From the NCBI RefSeq assembly GCF_963921235.1, contig NC_086105.1, forward strand, positions 95,852,001-95,916,000: a stretch of DNA of 64,000 nucleotides. The letters run 5' to 3'. How positions within the stretch are numbered: position 1 is the stretch's first letter; each line of letters opens with the position of its first letter. Shown in pieces: positions 12,044 through 44,054 of the stretch. The position numbers and the translations under genes were made by a program. Source of the DNA: Mobula hypostoma. Its lineage: Eukaryota. Below the pieces are notes generated by a model. That model ran no database searches and was not told the DNA's origin. It saw nothing but the letters and a program-made list of their open reading frames with translations.

Positions 12044-13903
12044 CTTTATTTCCATTATCTGCAGCTTCGTTTTAAATTTTCACTTTAAGCAGTGAGTAGT
12101 TACAATCTGGAACCCTGTCTCTGCAAAGGAGCGAAAAGCAGATCATTAGCAATCTTTTTTAAAAAAACTTTGTTTTTAGAGGGTACAACAAGGAAGATCA
12201 CCATGTTATGCGTTGGAATGATTGTATCGAGATAAATTATAGCCTGGATTGCTACTCCTTTAAAGACAGCAAATAAATATATATTGTTGTAAAAGGTCCA
12301 GATGACCAGGTTTTTACTGTCATGCACAGCTGTATATTGATGGTCATCCTTCCTGTGGATTCAGTGGTTATTATGTGACTTAAATTTAAGTAACAAATTC
12401 AGTTAACTAAATTAGCAAGTAATAAAATAATATTGCACTTGTTTCTGGAATGACCTCCAGGCTCTTACTAGGCAACCCCACAACTTATAAATTCTTACCT
12501 TTAATTCAAATCTCTCCATAGCATTGTTCCTCCCTCTGTCTGTAATCTCCCTCAACCTGACAATCTCTGAAATATATCCTCCACCATTTGTCCTATATCA
12601 CATCAGCTATTGTAATCATGGCGCTATTGTTGCCTCGTTTTACAGAGGAGCTTTTCATCATTATACTACATGGTCACCCAAGAATAAAGTTCATGGTGAC
12701 ATGCTGCAAACTATAGAGAAATTCCCATGACCATAGGTGCCACTTGTCTATGAAACTAAACATCAGCAATGCAATTTGCAATGCTGGCACAGTCTTTGGT
12801 TAATTGAGGAAAAGTCTGTTTAAAGATCAAACCAGTAAAACAAAACACATTGTCTCTCAGGCAGGAGTGATCCTGCTTCTCTGACTGCATCCAAGATATA
12901 GTCTATTCACAGAGCTGCCATCAATGTTTGTTCCTGCATATTTCTCCAAATTCACTGTCAAGTCTGGAAAATCAAAATCAGAGTCCTGTCCCAGGCCAGC
13001 TCACATATTAGGAGCAAGAGTACACTATTATTTATGAGTATCATAAATGGCCTGTTCATAACTTCAACTCTGCATTTGTTAACCCATAGTAACCTTTCAC
13101 CCCCTTACTATTTGTATTTACTTTCTGCATTTTAACACATTGCAAAGACTCTAATTCTGGCTTTCAGGAACAGATTTCAAAAGACTCACAGTCCTCTATT
13201 TTTATGTGGCGGCCCCCATTGTTTCAGACAATGACCCCTAGTTTGCGATTCTCCGACAAAAAAGGAACATTCTCTTCACATGAACCCTCAAAACTTAGAT
13301 GTCTGAATCAAGCTGACTCTCATTCGGAGTCAGGTTTAATATCACTAGCATATGTCATGAAATTTGATTTCTTTGCAGCAGCAGTACAATTCAATACATA
13401 ATAATAGAGAAAAACATGAATTACAGTAAATGTCTGTATGTTTATAACAGTTAGGTTAAATAAGTAGCACAAACATACTTATTTTTTAAAAAGTAGTGAG
13501 GTAGTGCTCATGGTTCAATGTCCATTCAGAAATCGAATCACAGAGGGGAAGAAGCTGTTCCTGAACCGTCGAGTGTGTGCCTCCTCCCTGATGGTAGCAT
13601 TGAGAACACGGTATGTCCTGGGTGATGGGGGTCCTAAATGATGGACACTGCCTTTTTGAGGCATCTCTGCTTGAAGATGTCCTGGATACTATGGAGGTTG
13701 GTGCTCACGATGAAGCTGACTAAGTTTACAAATCTCTGTAGCTTATTTAGATACTGTGCAGTAGTCCCCCCCTGCACCCCCTTCGGTATCAGACAGTGAT
13801 GCAGCTAGTTAAAATGCTCTCCGCGGTACATCTGTGAGTGGATACCAAATCTCCTCAAACTCCGAATGAAATATAGCCACTGTTGTCTGTTTTTTATAAC
13901 TGC

Positions 13904-14282
13904 GGAGGATGAGAAGTGATCTGATAGGGGTGTACAAGATGAGAGGCATTGATCGTGTGGATAGTCAGAGGGTTCTTCCCAGGGCTGAAATGGCTAGCAC
14001 CAGAGGGCTCAGTTTTATGGTGCTTGGAAGTAAGTACAGAGGAGATGTAAGGGGTAGGTTTGTTTGTTTTTTTTTTAAAATACAGAGAGTGGTGAGTGCG
14101 CGGAATGGGCTGCCAGCAACGGTGGTGGAGGCAGATACAATAGGGTCTTTAAGAGACTCCTGGATAGGTACATGGAGCTTAGAAAAATACAGGGCTATGG
14201 GTAACCTGAGGTAATTTCCAATGTTTGGCACAGCATTGTGGGCTGAAGGGCCTGTATTGTGCTGTAGGTTTTCTATGTTACT
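13904..14282 (+). mobile_element. CR1 3' fragment inserted in the Rex1 element
   Basis: MRSDLIGVYK.RGIDRVDSQR...; CR1 tail; Rex1 sequence continues on both sides (CTGC repeated). Confidence 0.82.
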
Positions 14283-14484
14283 CTGCATCCTTTTGTTAGG
14301 CCCAGGATAGATCCTCAGAGATAGTACTGACACCCAGGAAATTGCTCACTCTTTCCCCTTCTGATCCCTCTATAAAAACTGGTGTGTGTTCCCTCATCTT
14401 ATCCTTTCTGAAGTCCACAATCAGATCTTTGATCTTACTGACATTGAGTGCAAGGTTGTTGCTGCGACACCATCCAGCTAGATG

Positions 14485-17400
14485 ATATACCTCACTCCTC
14501 TACGCCCTCTGGTCACCATATACCTCACTACTGTACGCCCTCTGGTCACCATATACCTCACTACTGTACGCCCTCTGGTCACTATATCCCTCACTCCTGT
14601 ACGCGCTCTGGTCACCATATACCTCACTCCTGTACGCCCTCTGGTCACCATATCCCTCACTACTGTACGCCCTCTGGTCACTATATCCCTCACTCCTGTA
14701 CGCGCTCTGGTCACCATATACCTCACTCCTGTATGCCTTCTGGTCACCATATACCTCACTCCTGTACGCCCTCTGGTCACCATATCCCTCACTCCTGTAC
14801 GCCCTCTGGTCACCATATACCTCATTCCTGTACGCCCCCTGGTCACCATATCCCTCACTCCTGTACACCCTCTGGTCACCATATCCCTCACTCCTGTATG
14901 CCCTCTGGTCACCATATTCCTGTACGCCCTCTGGTCATCATATCTCTCATTCCTGTACGCCCTCTGGTGACCATATCCCTCACTCCTCTACGCCCTCTGG
15001 TCACCATATACCTCATTCCTGTACGCCCTAAGTCACCATATCCCTCACTCCTGTACGCCCTCTGCTCACCATAACCCTCATTAATGTATGCCCTCTGGTC
15101 ACCATATACCTCATTCCTGTACGCCCCCTGGTCACCATATCCCTCACTCCTGTACACCCTCTGGTCACCATATCCCTCACTCCTGTATGCCCTCTGGTCA
15201 CCATATTCCTGTACGCCCTCTGGTCATCATATCTCTCATTCCTGTACGCCCTCTGGTGACCATATCCCTCACTCCTCTACGCCCTCTGGTCACCATATAC
15301 CTCATTCCTGTACGCCCTAAGTCACCATATCCCTCACTCCTGTACGCCCTCTGCTCACCATAACCCTCATTAATGTATGCCCTCTGGTCACCATATACCT
15401 CATTCCTGTACGCCCTCTGGTCACCATATCCCTCACTCCTGTACGCCCTCTGGTCACCATATCCCTCACTCCTGTACGCCCTCTGGTCACCATATCCCTC
15501 ATTCCTGTACGCCCTCTGGTCGCCATATCCCTCATTCCTGTACGCCCTCTGGTCGCCATATCCCTCACTCCTGTACGCCCTCTGGTCGCCATATACCTCA
15601 TTCCTGTATGCCCTCTGGTCGCCATATCCCTCATTCCTGTACGCCCTCTGGTCACCATATCCCCTCATTCCTGTACGCCCTCTGGTCAGCATATCCCTCA
15701 TTCCTGTACGCCCTCTGGTCACCATATACCTCACTCCTGTACGCCCTCTGGTGACAATATACCTCACTCCTGTACACCCTAAGTCACCATATCCCTCATT
15801 CCTGTATGCCCTCTGGTCACCATATACCTCATTCCTGTACACCCTCTGGTCACCATATACCTTATTCCTGTACGCCCTCTGGTCGCCATATACCTGTATG
15901 CCCTATAGTCACCATACCTCACTCCTGTACGCCCCCTGGTCACCATATACCTCATTCCTGTACGCCCCCTGGTCACCATATACCTCATTCCTGTACGCCC
16001 CCTGGTCACCATATACCTCATTCCTGTACGCCCCCTGGTCACCATATCCCTCAATCCTGTACGCCCCCTGGTCACCATATCCCTCAATCCTGTACGCCCC
16101 CTGGTCACCATATCGCTCATTCCTGTACGCCCCCTGGTCACCATATCCCTCATTCCTGTACGCCCCCTGGTCACCATATCCCTCGTTCCTGTACGCCCCC
16201 TGGTCACCATATCCCTCGTTCCTGTACGCCCCCTGGTCACCATATCCCTCGTTCCTGTACGCCCCCTGGTCACCATATACCTCGTTCCTGTACGCCCCCT
16301 GGTCACCATATACCTCGTTCCTTTACGCCCCCAATCACCATATCCGTCGTTCCTGTACGCCCCCTGGTCACTATATCCCTCATTCCTGTACGCCCTCTGG
16401 TCACCATATACCTCATTCCTGTACGCCCCCTGGTCACCATATACCTCATTCCTGTACGCCCCCTGGTCACCATATACCTCATTCCTGTACGCCCCCTGGT
16501 CACCATATCCCTCAATCCTGTACGCCCCCTGGTCACCATATCCCTCAATCCTGTACGCCCCCTGGTCACCATATCGCTCATTCCTGTACGCCCCCTGGTC
16601 ACCATATCCCTCATTCCTGTACGCCCCCTGGTCACCATATCCCTCATTCCTGTACGCCCCCTGGTCACCATATCCCTCGTTCCTGTACGCCCCCTGGTCA
16701 CCATATCCCCTCATTCCTGTACGCCCCCTGGTCACCATATCCCTCATTCCTGTACGCCCCCTGGTCTCCATATCCCTCATTCCTGTACGCCCCCTGGTCT
16801 CCATATCCCTCACTCCTGTACGCCCCCTGGTCACCATATCCCTCATTCCTGTACGCCCCCTGGTCACCATATCCCTCATTCTTGTACGCCCCCTGGTCAC
16901 CATATCCCTCACTCCTGTACGCCCCCTGGTCTCCATATCCCTCAGTCTTGTACGCCCCCTGGTCACCATATCCCTCACTCTTGTACGCCCCCTGGTCTCC
17001 ATATCCCTCACTCTTGTACGCTCTCTGGTCACAATATCCCTCATTCCTGTACGCTCTCTGGTCACCATATCCCTCACTCCTGTACGCTCTCTGGTCACCA
17101 TATACCTCGTTCCTGTACGCCCCCTGGTCACCATATCCCTCACTCTTGTACGCCCCCTGGTCTCCATATCCCTCACTCTTGTACGCCCCCTGGTCACCAT
17201 ATCCCTCACTCCTGTACGCCCCCTGGTCACCATATCCCTCACTCTTGTACGCCCTCTGGTCTCCATATCCCTCATTCCTGTACGCCCTCTGGTCTCCATA
17301 TCCCTCACTCCTGTACGCCCCCTGGTCACCATATACCTCATTCCTGTACGCCCCCTGGTCACCATATCCCTCACTCCTGTACGCCCCCTGGTCACCATAT

Positions 17401-17660
17401 ACCTCATTCCTGTACGCCCCCTGGTCACCATATCCCTCATTCCTGTACGCCCCCTGGTCTCCATATCCCTCACTCTTGTACGCCCCCTGGTCACCATATC
17501 CCTCATTCCTGTACGCCCTCTGGTCTCCATATCCCTCACTCCTGTACGCCCCCTGGTCACCATATCCCTCATTCCTGTACGCCCCCTGGTCACCATATCC
17601 CTCATTCCTGTACGCCCCCTGGTCTCCATATCCCTCACTCTTGTACGCCCCCTGGTCACC
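14485..17660. repeat. 33-bp minisatellite, ~96 units, consensus ATAT(A/C)CCTCA(C/T)TCCTGTACGCCC(C/T)CTGGTCACC
   Basis: Directly visible tandem array; 3176 bp / 33 is about 96; the long ORFs here are 11-aa repeats. Confidence 0.98.
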
Positions 17661-18379
17661 ACCTGAAACTCAGCCACCAATAGTTGTATTGTCAGCAAAT
17701 TTATAGATGTCATTTGAGGATACGGACCTAGTTTTTCCAACCTTACCTCACAAGATTACCTGTCCATTCAAAGTATTAGTTCAGTCACCTTTTCTGAACT
17801 GCTTCCATCACATTAACATCCTTCCCTAAATAAGGAGGCAGATATTGCACACAGATGTAATCCCACCTAATGCCATGTATCCATATGTCACATCTAACCT
17901 CTGATATTACCTTCCTACTTTTGGATTCATTTCCCCAGAGCTAAGCAATAACATTTTGTTACTTCTTGTACTTGCCAATGCGTCTTTTGGTGAATCATGC
18001 ACTTGATTATCCTGACCCTCTGCATTTTAGGGATTCGCAGTCTCTCACTGATCACTCTTTTATTTGGTTAGAGATCCCTAGCACCGAGGCCCCAATGGTG
18101 ATCATTCTGTTCCTTGCATTGCGTGATACAAGACTCTCCAAACAGACATTCCATTCCGAGTCCTACCGCAGCAAGAGCTTAGCAGACCTTCTTGAAAAAG
18201 TGCTTGTCCCTGCTGACTCCTAGGAACTCCTGACCCGTGATTCAAAGTGAGTGAGTGGATGTAGATGGGATATTTCCATTAGTGGGGGAGTCTAGGACCA
18301 GAGGGCACAGCCTCAGAATAGCAGGATGTCCCTTTAGAACAGAGGGGGAATTTCTTTAGCCAAATGGTGGTGAATGTCA

Positions 18380-19665
18380 GAGTCATAGACATGTGCAGCA
18401 CAGAAACACATCTTTCTGTGCCAAACCATTTAAACTGCCTAGTCCCATTAACCTGCACCCAGACCATAGACGTCCGTAACTCTCCCATCCAAGTTCCTAT
18501 CGAGCTCACATGCCCCACGTGCACTGTCAGCTTGTTTCACACTCTGAGTGAAGAGGTTTTCCCTCATGTTCCCCTTAAACATCTCACCTTTCACCCTAAA
18601 CCCATGGCCTCTAGTTGTAGTCCCACACAACTTCTATGGAAAAAGCTTGCCTGCATTTACCCTGTCTATACCTCTAATTTGGTATACCTTCATTAAATCT
18701 CCCCCCAGTCATCTACATCCCAAGGTGTAAAGTCCAAACTTATTCAATCTTTCCTTACAGTCAGGTCCTCCAATTCCGGCAACATCCTTGTAAATAAAGT
18801 TGAAAGAGTACAGAGAAAATTTACATCTTTCCAGTAGGTAGGTGACCAAAACTGCACATAGTACTCCAAATCAGGCCTCACTAACATCTCATACAACTTC
18901 AACATAACATCCCAATTCCAGTACTTAAAACCTTAATTTACGAAGGCCATTGTGCCAAAAGTTTTCTTTAACTATCTACCTTTGACACCACTTTTCAATG
19001 ATTTATGGACCTGTATTTCCAGATCCCATTTGTTCTACCACACTCATCACTGCCCTACTTTTCACTGTGTATGTCTACACTGGTTGGTCCTACCAAAGTG
19101 CAACGCCTCACACTTGTCTGCATTAAATTCCATCTATTATTTTTCAGCCCATTTTCCAGCTGGTCCAGATCTTGCTGCAAGCTCTAATAGTCCTCCTCGC
19201 CGTCCACTACACCCCCAGTCTTGGTGTCATCCACAAATCTGCTGATCCAGTTAACCATATTATCATCCAGATCATTGGTATAGAGGACAAACAACAATGG
19301 ACTCAGCACTGATCCCTGCAGCACACCACTAGCCACAGGCCTTCAATCAGAGAGACAGCCATCTGCTACCACTCTCTGACTTCTCCCACAAAGCCAATGT
19401 CTAATCTAATTTACGACCTCATCTTGAATGCCAAGCAACTGAACTTTCCTGACCAACTTCCCATGTGAGACCTTATCAAAGGCCTTGCTAAAGTCCATGT
19501 AGACAATATCCACTGCCTTGCCTTCATCAACTTTCCTGGTAACCTCCTCGAAGAACTCTATAAGATTGGTTAGACATGACCTATCATACACAAAGCCATG
19601 CAGACTATCCCTCATTTGTCCCTGCCTATCCAAATACTCATATATCCTGTCCCTCAGAATACCTT
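18380..19665 (-). mobile_element. CR1 LINE, 3' part (continues at 26172)
   Basis: HGF...SCLTNLIEFFEEVTRKVDEGKAVDIVYMDFSKAFDKV on the minus strand. Confidence 0.85.
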
Positions 19666-23201: not shown

Positions 23202-23454
23202 CCAAGTCACCTTCATAAATCTTCTTTCCGAAATGCCAAGAATATACAAATAACCAATTTCAGACAATTCATTTGGTAACAGCGGCAGGTATAGTTTGAA
23301 CGAACTCCAGTGCAGCTTTTGGATCAAAAAATGTACGAGGAGGAGAGTTAGAAGGAAAAACTTTAATTCTTGTTGGGTAATGCAAGGAAGGAAACAGTTT
23401 CTTATCATATGCCTGTTTCATTACCAGAGCAAATCCTGATCTTTGTTCCATTAC

Positions 23455-25281
23455 GACATCCTGAACGCTAAAAAGAGGGGGTTTAGAGATGGAAATAGAG
23501 AGGAGCTGAGGGCAATACAGAGGGACCTGAAAGCCAGGATCAGGGAGGCTAAAGACAGGTACAGGAGGAAACTTGAGTGGAAACTCCAGCAGAACAACAT
23601 GAGAGAGGTCTGGAGTGGAATGAGGACCATCACTGGGTTCCGGCAAACTAGCAACAGAGGAGCTGAAGGCAGTGTGGACAGGGCCAATGAACTTAACCTG
23701 TTCTTTAACAGACTTGACATTGTGGCCCCTGCCCATCCCCCACATGAGCCATTTGTTGTCGGCCCCCAACCAACACTTATTCCACTCTCCCCTCCTACCC
23801 CTCCTCACAGTCCCCCACCCTGCTCTCATGACTATACCCCTTCCCCACACGAAACCACCACGGTGGGCTTCACAGCTGAACAGGTGAGAAGACAGCTGAA
23901 ACGTCTCAACCCAAGCAAGGCTGCAGGACCGGATGGTGTCAGTACCAGGGTGCTCAAAGCCTGTGCCCTTCAGCTATGTGGAGTACTTCGCCATGTATTC
24001 AACCTGAGCCTGAGGCTCCGGAGGGTTCCTGTACTGTGGAAAACATCCTGCCTCGTCCCTGTGCCGAAGATGCTATGCCCCCACGGCCTCAATGACTACA
24101 GACTGGTGGCATTGACCTCCCTCATCATGAAGACCCTGGAGAGACTTGTTCTGGAGCTGCTCCGGCCTATGGTCAGGCCACACTTAGATCCCCTCCAGTT
24201 CGCCTACCAGCCCCAACTAGGAGTTGACGATGCCATCGTCTACCTGCTGAACCGTGTCTACGCCCACCTGGACAAGCCAGCGAGCACTGTCAGGGTCATG
24301 TTTTTTGACTTCTCCAGTGCATTCAACACCATCCACCCTGCTCTGCTGGGGAAGAAGCTGACAGCGATACAGATGGATGCTTCCCTGGTATCATGGATTC
24401 TTGATTACCTGACTGGCAGACCACAGTACATGTGCTTGCAACACTGTGTGTCCGACAGACTGTTCAGCAGCACTGGGGCTCCACAGGGGACTGCCTTGTC
24501 TCCCTTTCTCTTCACCATTTACACCTCCGACTTCAACTACTGCACAGAGTCTTGTCATCTTCAGAAGTTTTCGGATGACTCTGCCATAGTTGGATGCATC
24601 AGCAAGGGAGATGAGGCTGAGTACAGGGCTACGGTAGGAAACTTTGTCACATGGTGTGAGCAGAATTATCTGCAGCTTAATGTGAAAAAGACTAAGGAGC
24701 TGGTGGTAGACCTGAGGAGAGCTAAGGTACCGGTGACCCCTGTTTCCATCCAGAGGGTCAGTGTGGACATGGTGGAGGATTACAAATACCTGGGGATACG
24801 AATTGACAATAAACTGGACTGGTCAAAGAACACTGAGGCTGTCCACAAGAAGGGTCAGAGCCATCTCTATTTCCTGAGGAGACTGAGGTCCTTTAACATC
24901 TGCCGGACGATGCTGAGGATGTTCTACGAGTCTGTGGTGGCCAGTGCGATCATGTTTGCTGTTGTGTGCTGGGGCAGCAGGCTGAGGGTAGCAGACACCA
25001 ACAGAATCAACAAACTCATTCGTAAGGCCAGTGATGTTCTGGGGATGGAACTGGACTCTCTGACGGTGGTATCTGAAAAGAGGTTGCTGTCCAAGTTGCA
25101 TGCCATCTTGGACAATATCTCCCATCCATTACATAATGTACTGGGTGGGCACAGGAGTACATTCAGCCAGAGACTCATTCCACCGAGATGCAACACAGAG
25201 CGTCATAGGAAGTCATTCCTGCCTGTGGCCATCAAACTTTACAACTCTTCCCTTGGAGGGTCAGACACCCTGAGCCAATAG
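23455..25281 (+). CDS. Rex1/Babar reverse transcriptase, uninterrupted but 5'-truncated ORF
   Basis: About 608 open codons with KAAGPDG, DPLQFAY, FFDFSSAFNTI, GAPQG, KFSDD, YKYLG motifs. Confidence 0.85.
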   Translation, partial: DILNAKKRGFRDGNREELRAIQRDLKARIREAKDRYRRKLEWKLQQNNMREVWSGMRTITGFRQTSNRGAEGSVDRANELNLFFNRLDIVAPAHPPHEPFVVGPQPTLIPLSPPTPPHSPPPCSHDYTPSPHETTTVGFTAEQVRRQLKRLNPSKAAGPDGVSTRVLKACALQLCGVLRHVFNLSLRLRRVPVLWKTSCLVPVPKMLCPHGLNDYRLVALTSLIMKTLERLVLELLRPMVRPHLDPLQFAYQPQLGVDDAIVYLLNRVYAHLDKPASTVRVMFFDFSSAFNTIHPALLGKKLTAIQMDASLVSWILDYLTGRPQYMCLQHCVSDRLFSSTGAPQGTALSPFLFTIYTSDFNYCTESCHLQKFSDDSAIVGCISKGDEAEYRATVGNFVTWCEQNYLQLNVKKTKELVVDLRRAKVPVTPVSIQRVSVDMVEDYKYLGIRIDNKLDWSKNTEAVHKKGQSHLYFLRRLRSFNICRTMLRMFYESVVASAIMFAVVCWGSRLRVADTNRINKLIRKASDVLGMELDSLTVVSEKRLLSKLHAILDNISHPLHNVLGGHRSTFSQRLIPPRCNTERHRKSFLPVAIKLYNSSLGGSDTLSQ

Positions 25282-40624: not shown

Positions 40625-42032
40625 ACTGATACAGTCGAAAGTTTCCACCTGTTTCAAAAGGGCAACAATTGTAGCAGTGCCCAAGAAGAACAGTTTGAGC
40701 TGCGTTAATGTCTGTCGTCCAGTTGAACTCTCATCTACAGTGATGAAGTTCTTTGAGAGGTTGGTCATGGCTAGAATTGACTCCTGCCTCACTGAGGGCC
40801 TGGACCCACTGCAATTTGCCTATCACCATAATAGGTCTACGGCAGATGCCATCTCATTTGCTCTCCACACGGCCTTGGATCACCTGGACAAATCAAATAC
40901 CTATGTCAGGATGCTGTTCATTGATTATAGCTCCGTGTTTAACACCATCATTCTTACAGTCCTGATTGAAAAGCTACAGAGCCTGGGCCTCTGTATTTCC
41001 CTTTGCAACTGGATCCTCGACTTTGTCTGTGTGGATGGGTAATAACATCTCCACCTCGCTGACAATCAACACTGGTGCACCTCAGGGATGAGTGCTTAGC
41101 CCACTCCTCTACTCTCTCTTCTCCCATGACTGTATGGTTGGCCATCGCTCAAATGCCATCTAAAAATGTACTGATGGTACAACCATTGTTGGCAGAATCT
41201 CAGACGGTGACAAGAGGGTGTACAGGAGCGAGATATACCAGCTCATTGAGTGTGTGGCAGCAACAACCTCGCACTCAACATTGGTAAGAAAGAGCTGATT
41301 GTGGACTTCAGAAAGGGTAAGTCGAGGGAACACACACCAATCCTTATAGAGGGATCAGGAGTGGAGAGAGTGAGCAATTTCATGTTCCTGAGTGTTCATA
41401 CCTTTGAGGACTTAACCTGTTCCCAACATATCGATACAGCTATAAAGAAGGCAAGACAGTGGCTATGTGTCATTACAAGTTTGAGGAGATTGGTATGTCA
41501 CCTAAAGCACTCAAAATTTTCTACAGATGTACAGTGGAGAGCATTCTGACTGGCTGCATCACTGTCAAGTATGGGGAGGGGGCTATTGCACAGGATCGAA
41601 GTAAGTTGCACAGAGTTGTAAACTTAGTCAGCTCCATCATGGGTACCAGCCTCCATAGTATCTAAGACATCTACAAGGAGCGGTGCCTCAAAAAGGTGGC
41701 ATCCGTCATTAAGGACCCCAATCACCCAGGATGTGCCCTCTTCTCACTGTTACCATCAGAAAGGAAGTACAGAGGCCTGAAGGCACACACTCAGCACGTC
41801 AGCAACAGCTTCTTCCCCTCTGCCATCCGATTCCTGAATGACCATTGAATCCATGAACAGTACCTCACTACTACTATTATTTCTGATTTTGCATGACTTA
41901 ATTGATTTAACCATTGAATTTACACGCACTGACTGTAATTCAGTTTTTTTTGTGTTATGTATTTCATTGTACTGCTACCACAAAGTTAAGAAATTTCACA
42001 ACACAATGCTGGTGATACTAAACCTGATTCTG
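40625..42032 (+). mobile_element. 5'-truncated Rex1/Babar LINE (frameshifted RT)
   Basis: [51 protein letters not shown]; tail GATACTAAACCTGATTCTGA. Confidence 0.88.
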
Positions 42033-42304
42033 ATAAAGGAATCCAAGTTAGAGATGGCGAAAGATCAATCTTGGTGGAGACATGGGTGATTTCTTTGCAT
42101 GAATAGTGCCACAGAACCTTTTTTATCTACATGAACAGTAATTAACCTAGATTACTATCACATTTGTAAAGTATATAGTGCAGGACTCTGTCGTCAACAC
42201 TGCAGTATCCCTTCAACAGAGGAATGCTCTCGCAGCATCCGTGACAGTGAAGCATTCCTCCAATATTTCTCCTTCATCAGTGCAGTGTTCCCTTCACAAA
42301 ATAA

Positions 42305-42940: not shown

Positions 42941-43319
42941 CATACTAGCCTTCCACAGCTAACATTTGTTCAGTTCTTGCTCTCTTAATTTATGTATATG
43001 TTATGTTGTATGTTGTCTGAACCTACATGCCTGTGATGCTGTGGCAAGCAAGTCTTACATTGTACCTGTACCTATGTATATTGTATATGGATGTGTACTT
43101 GTGTCATATACTCAACTGTACTTGTGTATTTGATAATAAACTTGACTGAAGAGTGCTGTCTTAGCACTGCCTCTGAAACAGTGATTTCTTCACTAATCAT
43201 CTAACAGTGCAACATTCTCTCGGGGAATGTTGTTTTGGATAATGTGCTCAAGCCTTTAGAATAGGACATAAACCCACAGTCTTCAAATTCTGTGTTAAAT
43301 GAATGTTCTCCATTTTTAG

Positions 43320-43792
43320 GTATGACAATCGCTGCAGGCACCTTACTTCAAAACAGATCGAGGAGAAATTGGTACAAGGGTGCCCATATGTTATCAGATT
43401 CTGCCTGGACAAGGGTACAGTGTCCTTTGAAGATCTGGTGTATGGAACAAACAGGATGGAGCCGGCCAGTGTGGAAGGAGACCCTGTCATCATTAAGGCA
43501 GATGGATTTCCGACCTATCACTTGGCAAATGTTGTTGATGACCATCACATGAATATCAGCCATGTTCTGCGGGGTACTGAGTGGCTAACTTCCACTGCCA
43601 AGCACGTGTTGATGTACAGAGCCTTCGGCTGGGATCCACCAGTTTTTGCTCACCTTCCTCTCCTCTTGAACAAGGACGGCAGCAAGCTGTCTAAGCGTCA
43701 GAGTGATCTGTTCATTCAGAACTTTTCCCAGAATGGGTACCTCCCAGAGGCTTTACTGGACATTGTTACGAACTGTGGTTCAGGCTTCTCAG
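43320..43792 (+). CDS. EARS2: EARS2 exon 4 (KMSKS-type motif KLSKR)
   Basis: tttag|...|gtattg; YDNRCR...[26 protein letters not shown]...KLSKR. Confidence 0.97.
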
Positions 43793-44054
43793 GTATTGTT
43801 CTGTTCTGTTTGGAGTGCCTTATACACGGGACTGCAAATCGGCTGGGCTATGTTGAGGGAGGGTTGTGCGGAGCTTAGAGTGTGTCAGATAGAGGTTGTT
43901 TTAAATTGAGCCTGCAGGCAGGGTTATGTACAGAATGGATTGAGTATTTACAGGTTTGGCATATTATGGACATACTGGGGTATGTTGTATGTAGGATATT
44001 TGGAGTAAAATGATAGCAGCAGGGTCTTGTTCTTCTGGGTGCTCATGAAAAGGA

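Follow-up and report, generated by a model that had tools for sequence, protein, structure and literature searches.

How a few codons of a retrotransposon come to be repeated nearly a hundred times, and whether this happens as the element inserts or later, in place, is the question raised by a 33-bp tandem array in the ray Mobula hypostoma whose units read as reverse transcriptase (RT) on the minus strand. We analyzed the whole surrounding stretch of 64,000 nucleotides (NC_086105.1, positions 95,852,001 to 95,916,000, forward strand), hereafter the window, and give all coordinates from its first letter. An earlier note on this DNA had described the array as an amplified piece of a Rex1 RT, with the parent sequence and the amplified state both visible in the window.

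The array and its parent family

The array, its immediate flanks, and a second copy of the same LINE family in the window are as follows.

14485 to 17661, minus strand: minisatellite of 97 units of 33 bp, G-rich on the minus strand (Tandem Repeats Finder and segmentation)
17662 to 17721, minus strand: 5′ remnant of a putative Rex1/Babar-type RT, with a FADN (FADD) box (17699-17688) followed by an in-frame TGA (17672-17670) (alignment to the sister copy and to the relative P0025)
14303 to 14484, minus strand: RT-encoding DNA abutting the 3′ end of the array (HLAGWC..LNVSKIKDLIVDFRK..), with 85% identity to 41252-41384 of the sister copy (alignment to the sister copy and P0025)
41143 to 42033, plus strand: sister copy from this family, decayed, whose single unit is at 41206-41238 (alignment)

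Tandem Repeats Finder reported one array, about 3.2 kb of head-to-tail 33-bp units at 14485-17661 (period 33, 97.0 copies, 90% matches, 1% indels, score 4677). Segmentation by dynamic programming also gave 97 units, of which 87 have the exact 33-bp length and 10 deviate through small indels (26 to 34 bp); 50 distinct unit types are present, and mean identity is 0.907 between pairs and 0.933 between neighbors. A search of the window with a 22-base unit core returned 93 matches against 0 expected from 100 shuffles; 92 lie in the array, and the remaining one is on the plus strand at 41206-41227. The G+C content of the array is 55%; G is in excess on the minus strand (GC skew 0.55), where each unit spells 11 RT codons, GDQ(G/R)AYR(N/S)E(G/V)Y. 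The amplified unit starts 11 codons past the FADD box of the RT, in agreement with the earlier claim of an approximately 96-fold amplification of 11 codons after this box. That claim had also treated flanks and array as one minus-strand RT, and the sequence does read as written (..IYKFADNTTIGG*VSG, then the units, then HLAGWCRSNNLALNVSKIKDLIVDFRK), but the nominal RT frame is closed through the array, with in-frame stops in 3 units and frame shifts in 10.

Five of the six unit frames lack stops and thereby yield ORFs of 625 to 777 aa, and one RNA run (X27) of organism A, the source species, has 16% of the sampled array words. A functional array, whether encoding a repeat protein or serving as a transcribed or regulatory element, is nevertheless extremely unlikely: the RT frame is closed by the upstream TGA and by the 3 stop-bearing and 10 frame-shifting units, the 777-aa array ORF has no relatives, five array ORFs are absent from the protein collection, and the sole Pfam match is sub-threshold and of low complexity. 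As for the words in X27, the array may be transcribed or the library may carry genomic DNA.

When the array was collapsed to its first or last unit, the minus strand and the sister copy (41143-41420) could be aligned through both junctions with no gap, and the 3′ flank (14470-14335) was 85% identical to sister positions 41252-41384. The teleost relative P0025 mapped in the same order, amino acids 548 to 576 to 17720-17634, 568 to 640 to 14517-14299, and 641 to 753 to 13915-13583; its first two segments overlap by 9 residues, which are the repeated unit itself, and the array unit aligns with P0025 amino acids 566 to 576 as well as with the lone unit of the sister copy (41206-41238). The flanks are therefore collinear with the family across the array, as had been proposed, and the coordinates that had been given for the unamplified copy proved correct, so that parent and amplified states do stand in one window.

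Beyond the window, the motif is present twice in 0 of 51 database relatives that contain the FADD box, and at the place of the window's last unit and its flank, read-derived contigs of the family show ..YRSEIYQLVEWC... Words from the Rex1-type flanks are 10^4 to 10^6 deep in all four ray species. Given this depth and these contigs, thousands of family copies are unamplified, and a single unit is the family norm.

The array family is likely a Rex1/Babar-type LINE, judging from its domains, from motif spacing, and from the identities of its teleost relatives. The ORF of the sister copy matches RVT_1, and its nearest database relative is an uncharacterized M. hypostoma protein (70% identity). Teleost relatives (57 to 64% identity) carry RVT_1 and PF09004 together with FSSAFNT..QQRLYFLR motifs, those of the Rex1 primers, spaced 570 bp apart, and the sister copy has YSSVFNT at the Rex1 primer motif; the RTX1-F1/R3 primers target RT motifs about 550 bp apart (PMC4635592). 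The same teleost proteins are 39 to 46% identical to the bona fide Rex1 ORF of the window (below), compared with 23 to 33% for its L2-like copies. Database naming (Atlas and source names) supplied no clade, giving only "reverse transcriptase" or "hypothetical." Rex1/Babar LINEs have a conserved 3′ UTR with oligonucleotide tandem repeats at its end; in the array family the 3′ UTR is common to the sister copy at 72%, and the tails show only degenerate CTGATT-like reiteration. In Rex1/Babar elements an AP endonuclease lies upstream of the RT and is often missing through 5′ truncation (PMC6274825). The relative P0050, possibly a chimeric gene model, combines Exo_endo_phos (AP-endonuclease) with RVT_1 and PF09004, and both copies of the array family in the window are truncated or decayed. 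Four teleost proteins (P0031, P0150, P0151, and P0003) have the RT of this LINE fused to ion channel, ZP/CUB, lectin/BTB, and VWD domains, and look like gene-model chimeras from intronic LINE copies.

The window also contains a Rex1 reading frame of another lineage.

23443 to 25281, plus strand: bona fide Rex1 ORF, open over 612 aa, with RVT_1, PF09004, and an RTX1-F1 site at 24310-24330 (1 mismatch)
24607 to 24636, plus strand: GDEAEYRATV, the equivalent codons within this ORF

This ORF holds the only RTX1-F1 primer site in the window, matching at 20 of 21 bases. Its amino-acid identity to the array family is about 30%, and it is therefore of a different lineage. Hence, the coordinates of GDEAEYRATV in what had been called the intact Rex1 were accurate, but this element is not of the array's family; the label "Rex1" for the array family itself was roughly right in view of RVT_1, the Rex1 motifs, and PF09004 in relatives. 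The ORF looks young and may represent a recently active lineage.

The host insertion and the internal order of the array

The array-bearing copy lies within an older LINE and is itself interrupted.

17722 to 19525, minus strand: older L2/CR1-like LINE that received the insertion (YMDFSKAFDKV..FVDDTK), whose C-terminal coding remnant resumes below about 13305
13903 to 14302, plus strand: nested fragment from the 3′ end of a very high-copy L2-like element, antisense within the Rex1-type fragment (alignment gap and word depth of 10^5 to 10^6); its loose end encodes RGDLIEVYK
13306 to 13902, minus strand: rest of the Rex1-type fragment, comprising decayed C-terminal coding sequence and 3′ UTR, 72% identical to sister positions 41437-42033, with a weak PF09004 match

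Homology to the family begins only at about 17721, leaving just 59 to 60 bp of RT 5′ of the array, and the array-bearing copy is therefore 5′-truncated. On the other side, homology returns beyond the foreign piece of about 400 bp (13903-14302), where 13902-13324 matches 41437-42033 at 72%. Since the L2/CR1-like remnant is found on both sides of the Rex1-type piece, the latter is an ordinary truncated LINE insertion in an older LINE. No target-site duplication was seen for this insertion, and the host LINE seems short by about 40 bp there. The array-bearing copy (17721 to about 13306) is dead, owing to the in-frame TGA at 17672-17670, the stops and frame shifts in its units, and the nested insertion. 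The nested L2-like 3′-end family, with a summed word depth of 10^5 to 10^6 in all four ray species, is among the most abundant repeats here, and many of its copies begin at one point, just past the RGDLIEVYK codons.

To infer ancestral unit states, we used the sister copy together with the consensus of the family. At the three diagnostic unit positions (10 A, 23 G, and 29 T), most ancestral states lie near the 14485 end, and the two-thirds toward 17660 are mainly derived. By array quarter, units carry a mean of 0.92, 0.27, 1.47, and 2.05 ancestral states of the 3, such states becoming commoner as the 14485 end is approached (Spearman 0.58, p = 4e-9). Units diverge on average by 7.0% inside the 5′ domain and by 9.4% inside the 3′ domain, compared with 10.8% from one domain to the other. 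Superimposed on this polarity are perfect duplications of several units, the two longest being the following.

14801 to 15415, minus strand: block of 9 units (289 bp) duplicated exactly in tandem, giving a perfect self-match of 326 bp at an offset of 289 bp (15415-15090 versus 15126-14801)
15936 to 16645, minus strand: perfect self-match of 249 bp at an offset of 461 bp, or 14 units (16645-16397 versus 16184-15936)

Shorter perfect internal duplications occur at 3, 5, and 15 units. The contiguous blocks of variants, together with the perfect multi-unit repeats, argue that the array grew through repeated out-of-register events after mutations had accumulated, and some of these duplications are very recent.

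Read-derived contigs and a second ray species

Read evidence was taken from Logan contigs, of which the best-matching set may come from the window's own sample, making this evidence independent of the assembler and not of the sample; the word-depth sums are rough. Run X1 (organism A) yielded a contig of 662 bp and depth 21.6 that shows 0 differences over 17689-18060 and crosses the L2/Rex1 junction at 17720/17719. Summed depth in the array bins at 17540-17629 was 331 to 2705, or 15 to 125 times single-copy depth, and contigs joining unit to unit in organism A likewise had 0 differences, each at 4 to 11 times single-copy depth. Long, near-identical arrays are error-prone in assembly, and no contig among those listed bridges flank and array on either side. 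Even so, that the assembler created the length or the tandem structure carries almost no weight with us: the read-derived unit-to-unit junctions and the depths to which they sum argue against a gross assembly artifact, and the array is found in a second species too. The depth in organism A is compatible with roughly 100 units, and perhaps with as many as about double this number. Array words in this species are 10^2 to 10^3 deep, compared with 10^4 to 10^6 for words of the flanking family.

The second species, organism B, has the same insertion. In run X5, a contig with a depth of 61.7 covers 17689-18060 with 19 differences in 372 bp (5.1%) and, as a single-copy contig, shows the identical L2/Rex1 junction at 17720/17719. 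Array words in organism B are 10,745 to 111,942 deep, or 174 to 1814 times single copy; once normalized, they are 15 to 30 times as abundant as in organism A, a ratio by depth in which their genomic location in B is not set. No array words were present in the runs of organisms C and E. Across the index, array words occurred only in A (0.39 to 0.44) and B (0.14 to 0.26), with a trace in organism I, while six other species had flank words without array words. The flank contigs of X1 and X5 both depart from the window at 17688 into 48 to 64 common letters that are family-like (17641-17688), probably a de Bruijn path through a 31-mer common to thousands of copies.

Because organisms A and B share the insertion junction, the insertion predates their split. 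The array with its derived G-rich variants very probably predates it as well, its copy number has changed greatly since, and the array of organism B probably counts on the order of 1000 units or more.

Abundance of this kind bears on the suggestion in the earlier note of a hot spot seeding arrays genome-wide. If the 33-bp segment were a recurrent hot spot, or if an array-bearing source element had spread copies, array words far in excess of the yield of one 3-kb array could be expected, as is the case in organism B. In organism A, however, array words 90 to 94% alike add up to about what one or two arrays of the 97-unit size would contribute, and the other copy in the window has a single unit; with no doubled motif among the 51 relatives, a genome-wide hot spot was not borne out, and we regard both forms of this explanation as highly improbable. 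It is also unlikely, if somewhat less so, that coding segments of mobulid LINEs, including the 33-bp stretch after the FADD box, are systematically prone to seed arrays that can pass from minisatellite to satellite size in the time separating two species. Were this true, it would mean a lineage-specific, sequence-dependent process of recombination or replication acting on G-rich LINE DNA.

Mode of growth and known counterparts

We are fairly confident that the array originated in a dead, 5′-truncated Rex1/Babar-type copy, in which a 33-bp stretch of RT was duplicated after insertion and grew stepwise in situ. Under this account, a non-functional, 5′-truncated copy of a high-copy LINE would have inserted into the older L2-like LINE, and 33 bp of its RT coding sequence (11 codons) would then have been duplicated. 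Growth in place, whether through exchange out of register (between homologues or between sister chromatids), through gene conversion, through replication slippage, or through several of these, may have turned the duplicate into a G-rich minisatellite that would have been present in the common ancestor of the two ray species and subject to turnover ever since. The present outcome would be about 97 units in the species of the window, and in organism B probably a number on the order of 1000 or above, in an array presumably without coding function. Growth in steps, as opposed to a single burst, is favored by the ancestral variants at one end, the 289- and 461-bp block duplications, and the difference in copy number between the species; the molecular mechanism and the cause of the first duplication are inferred.

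The array, or its first units, might instead have been made at retrotransposition, the RT repeatedly slipping or jumping back on its RNA template near the end of cDNA synthesis. The position of the array agrees with this, being only 59 to 60 bp from the point of 5′ truncation, where reverse transcription ended, as does a first duplication that flanking direct repeats do not explain. Yet template jumping, which the earlier note had offered as a possible cause, would not account for shared variants in contiguous domains with ancestral states at one end, for perfect duplications of multi-unit blocks, or for a 15- to 30-fold gap in abundance between two species with a common junction, and a two-unit state is found in none of the 51 relatives. 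The variant domains, block duplications, and species difference show that growth continued long after insertion. Template jumping is accordingly disfavored as the main cause and very unlikely overall; at most, such an event could have supplied the seed for stepwise growth in place.

Regarding the first duplication, we looked for the signatures of the classical models. Direct repeats flanking the junction amount to at most 1 nt (a T) in common, GGTG(A/T/G)C recurring at 17 and 45 bp and not at 33, and no truncated terminal unit was found, the array comprising 96 whole units plus 1 nt. Neither classical model of first duplication is therefore evidenced at this locus. Hairpin-driven slippage was considered and rejected, as DNA of three units and of the single-copy site folds no better than shuffles (z of 0.55 to 1.46; -1.2 for the 3′ units). 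Canonical G4 motifs are absent from the array, in which only long-loop or two-tetrad patterns occur, enriched in the derived 5′ domain; these non-canonical patterns are a weak lead.

Comparable origins are known elsewhere. In humans, at least 23% of minisatellites and satellites are TE-derived, some TE regions being hot spots, and 94% of the TE-derived repeats lack signatures of the two classical initiation models (Ahmed & Liang 2012, PMC3389668). The array in the window resembles those repeats in having an internal piece of a TE as its unit, in its gradual local duplication, and in lacking the classical signatures that are mostly missing there as well. Unlike in the human survey, the host is a ray and the source likely a Rex1/Babar-type LINE, and the parent state, the junction, and a larger version in a second species are all visible. 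Satellites derived from LINE ORF2 include Pvc20 (harbor seal, L1 ORF2) and PROsat (Phodopus, L1 ORF2), and chicken HinfI/SCR1 consists of CR1 3′ UTR and partial ORF2 (all listed in PMC9659126). By their descriptions, these three share with the array a monomer from RT-encoding LINE ORF2. They differ from it in LINE clade and host; the unit in the window has a length of just 33 bp, and its array is still embedded in the parent copy, the flanks being intact on either side.

Polar variant maps are a feature of G-rich hypervariable minisatellites in vertebrates. The array is similar to them in its strand asymmetry, its unit of tens of base pairs, its ancestral-like units at one end, and its multi-unit register shifts, whereas variation is seen here only as a difference in word depth between species. 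Variant polarity in minisatellites has also been noted in the human survey (PMC3389668). Since tandem repeats derived from TEs and from LINE ORF2 are documented, the array adds a case of a known process without changing current knowledge. It nonetheless offers a clean locus for minisatellite birth, with parent sequence, junction, array, polarity, and recent block duplications in one window, and the far larger version in a related species turns it into a natural experiment, on a small scale, in how elasmobranch minisatellites become satellites. Elasmobranch repeats have been little studied, and the array locus is usable as a marker.

Just beyond the sister LINE copy, an uninterrupted ORF of 191 aa (43303-43878, plus strand) matches the catalytic domain of bacterial/mitochondrial-type glutamate--tRNA ligase (Pfam tRNA-synt_1c, E = 3.5e-42; PDB GluRS, E = 1e-45). 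An exon of an EARS2-like gene and a retrocopy are both possible identities for this ORF.
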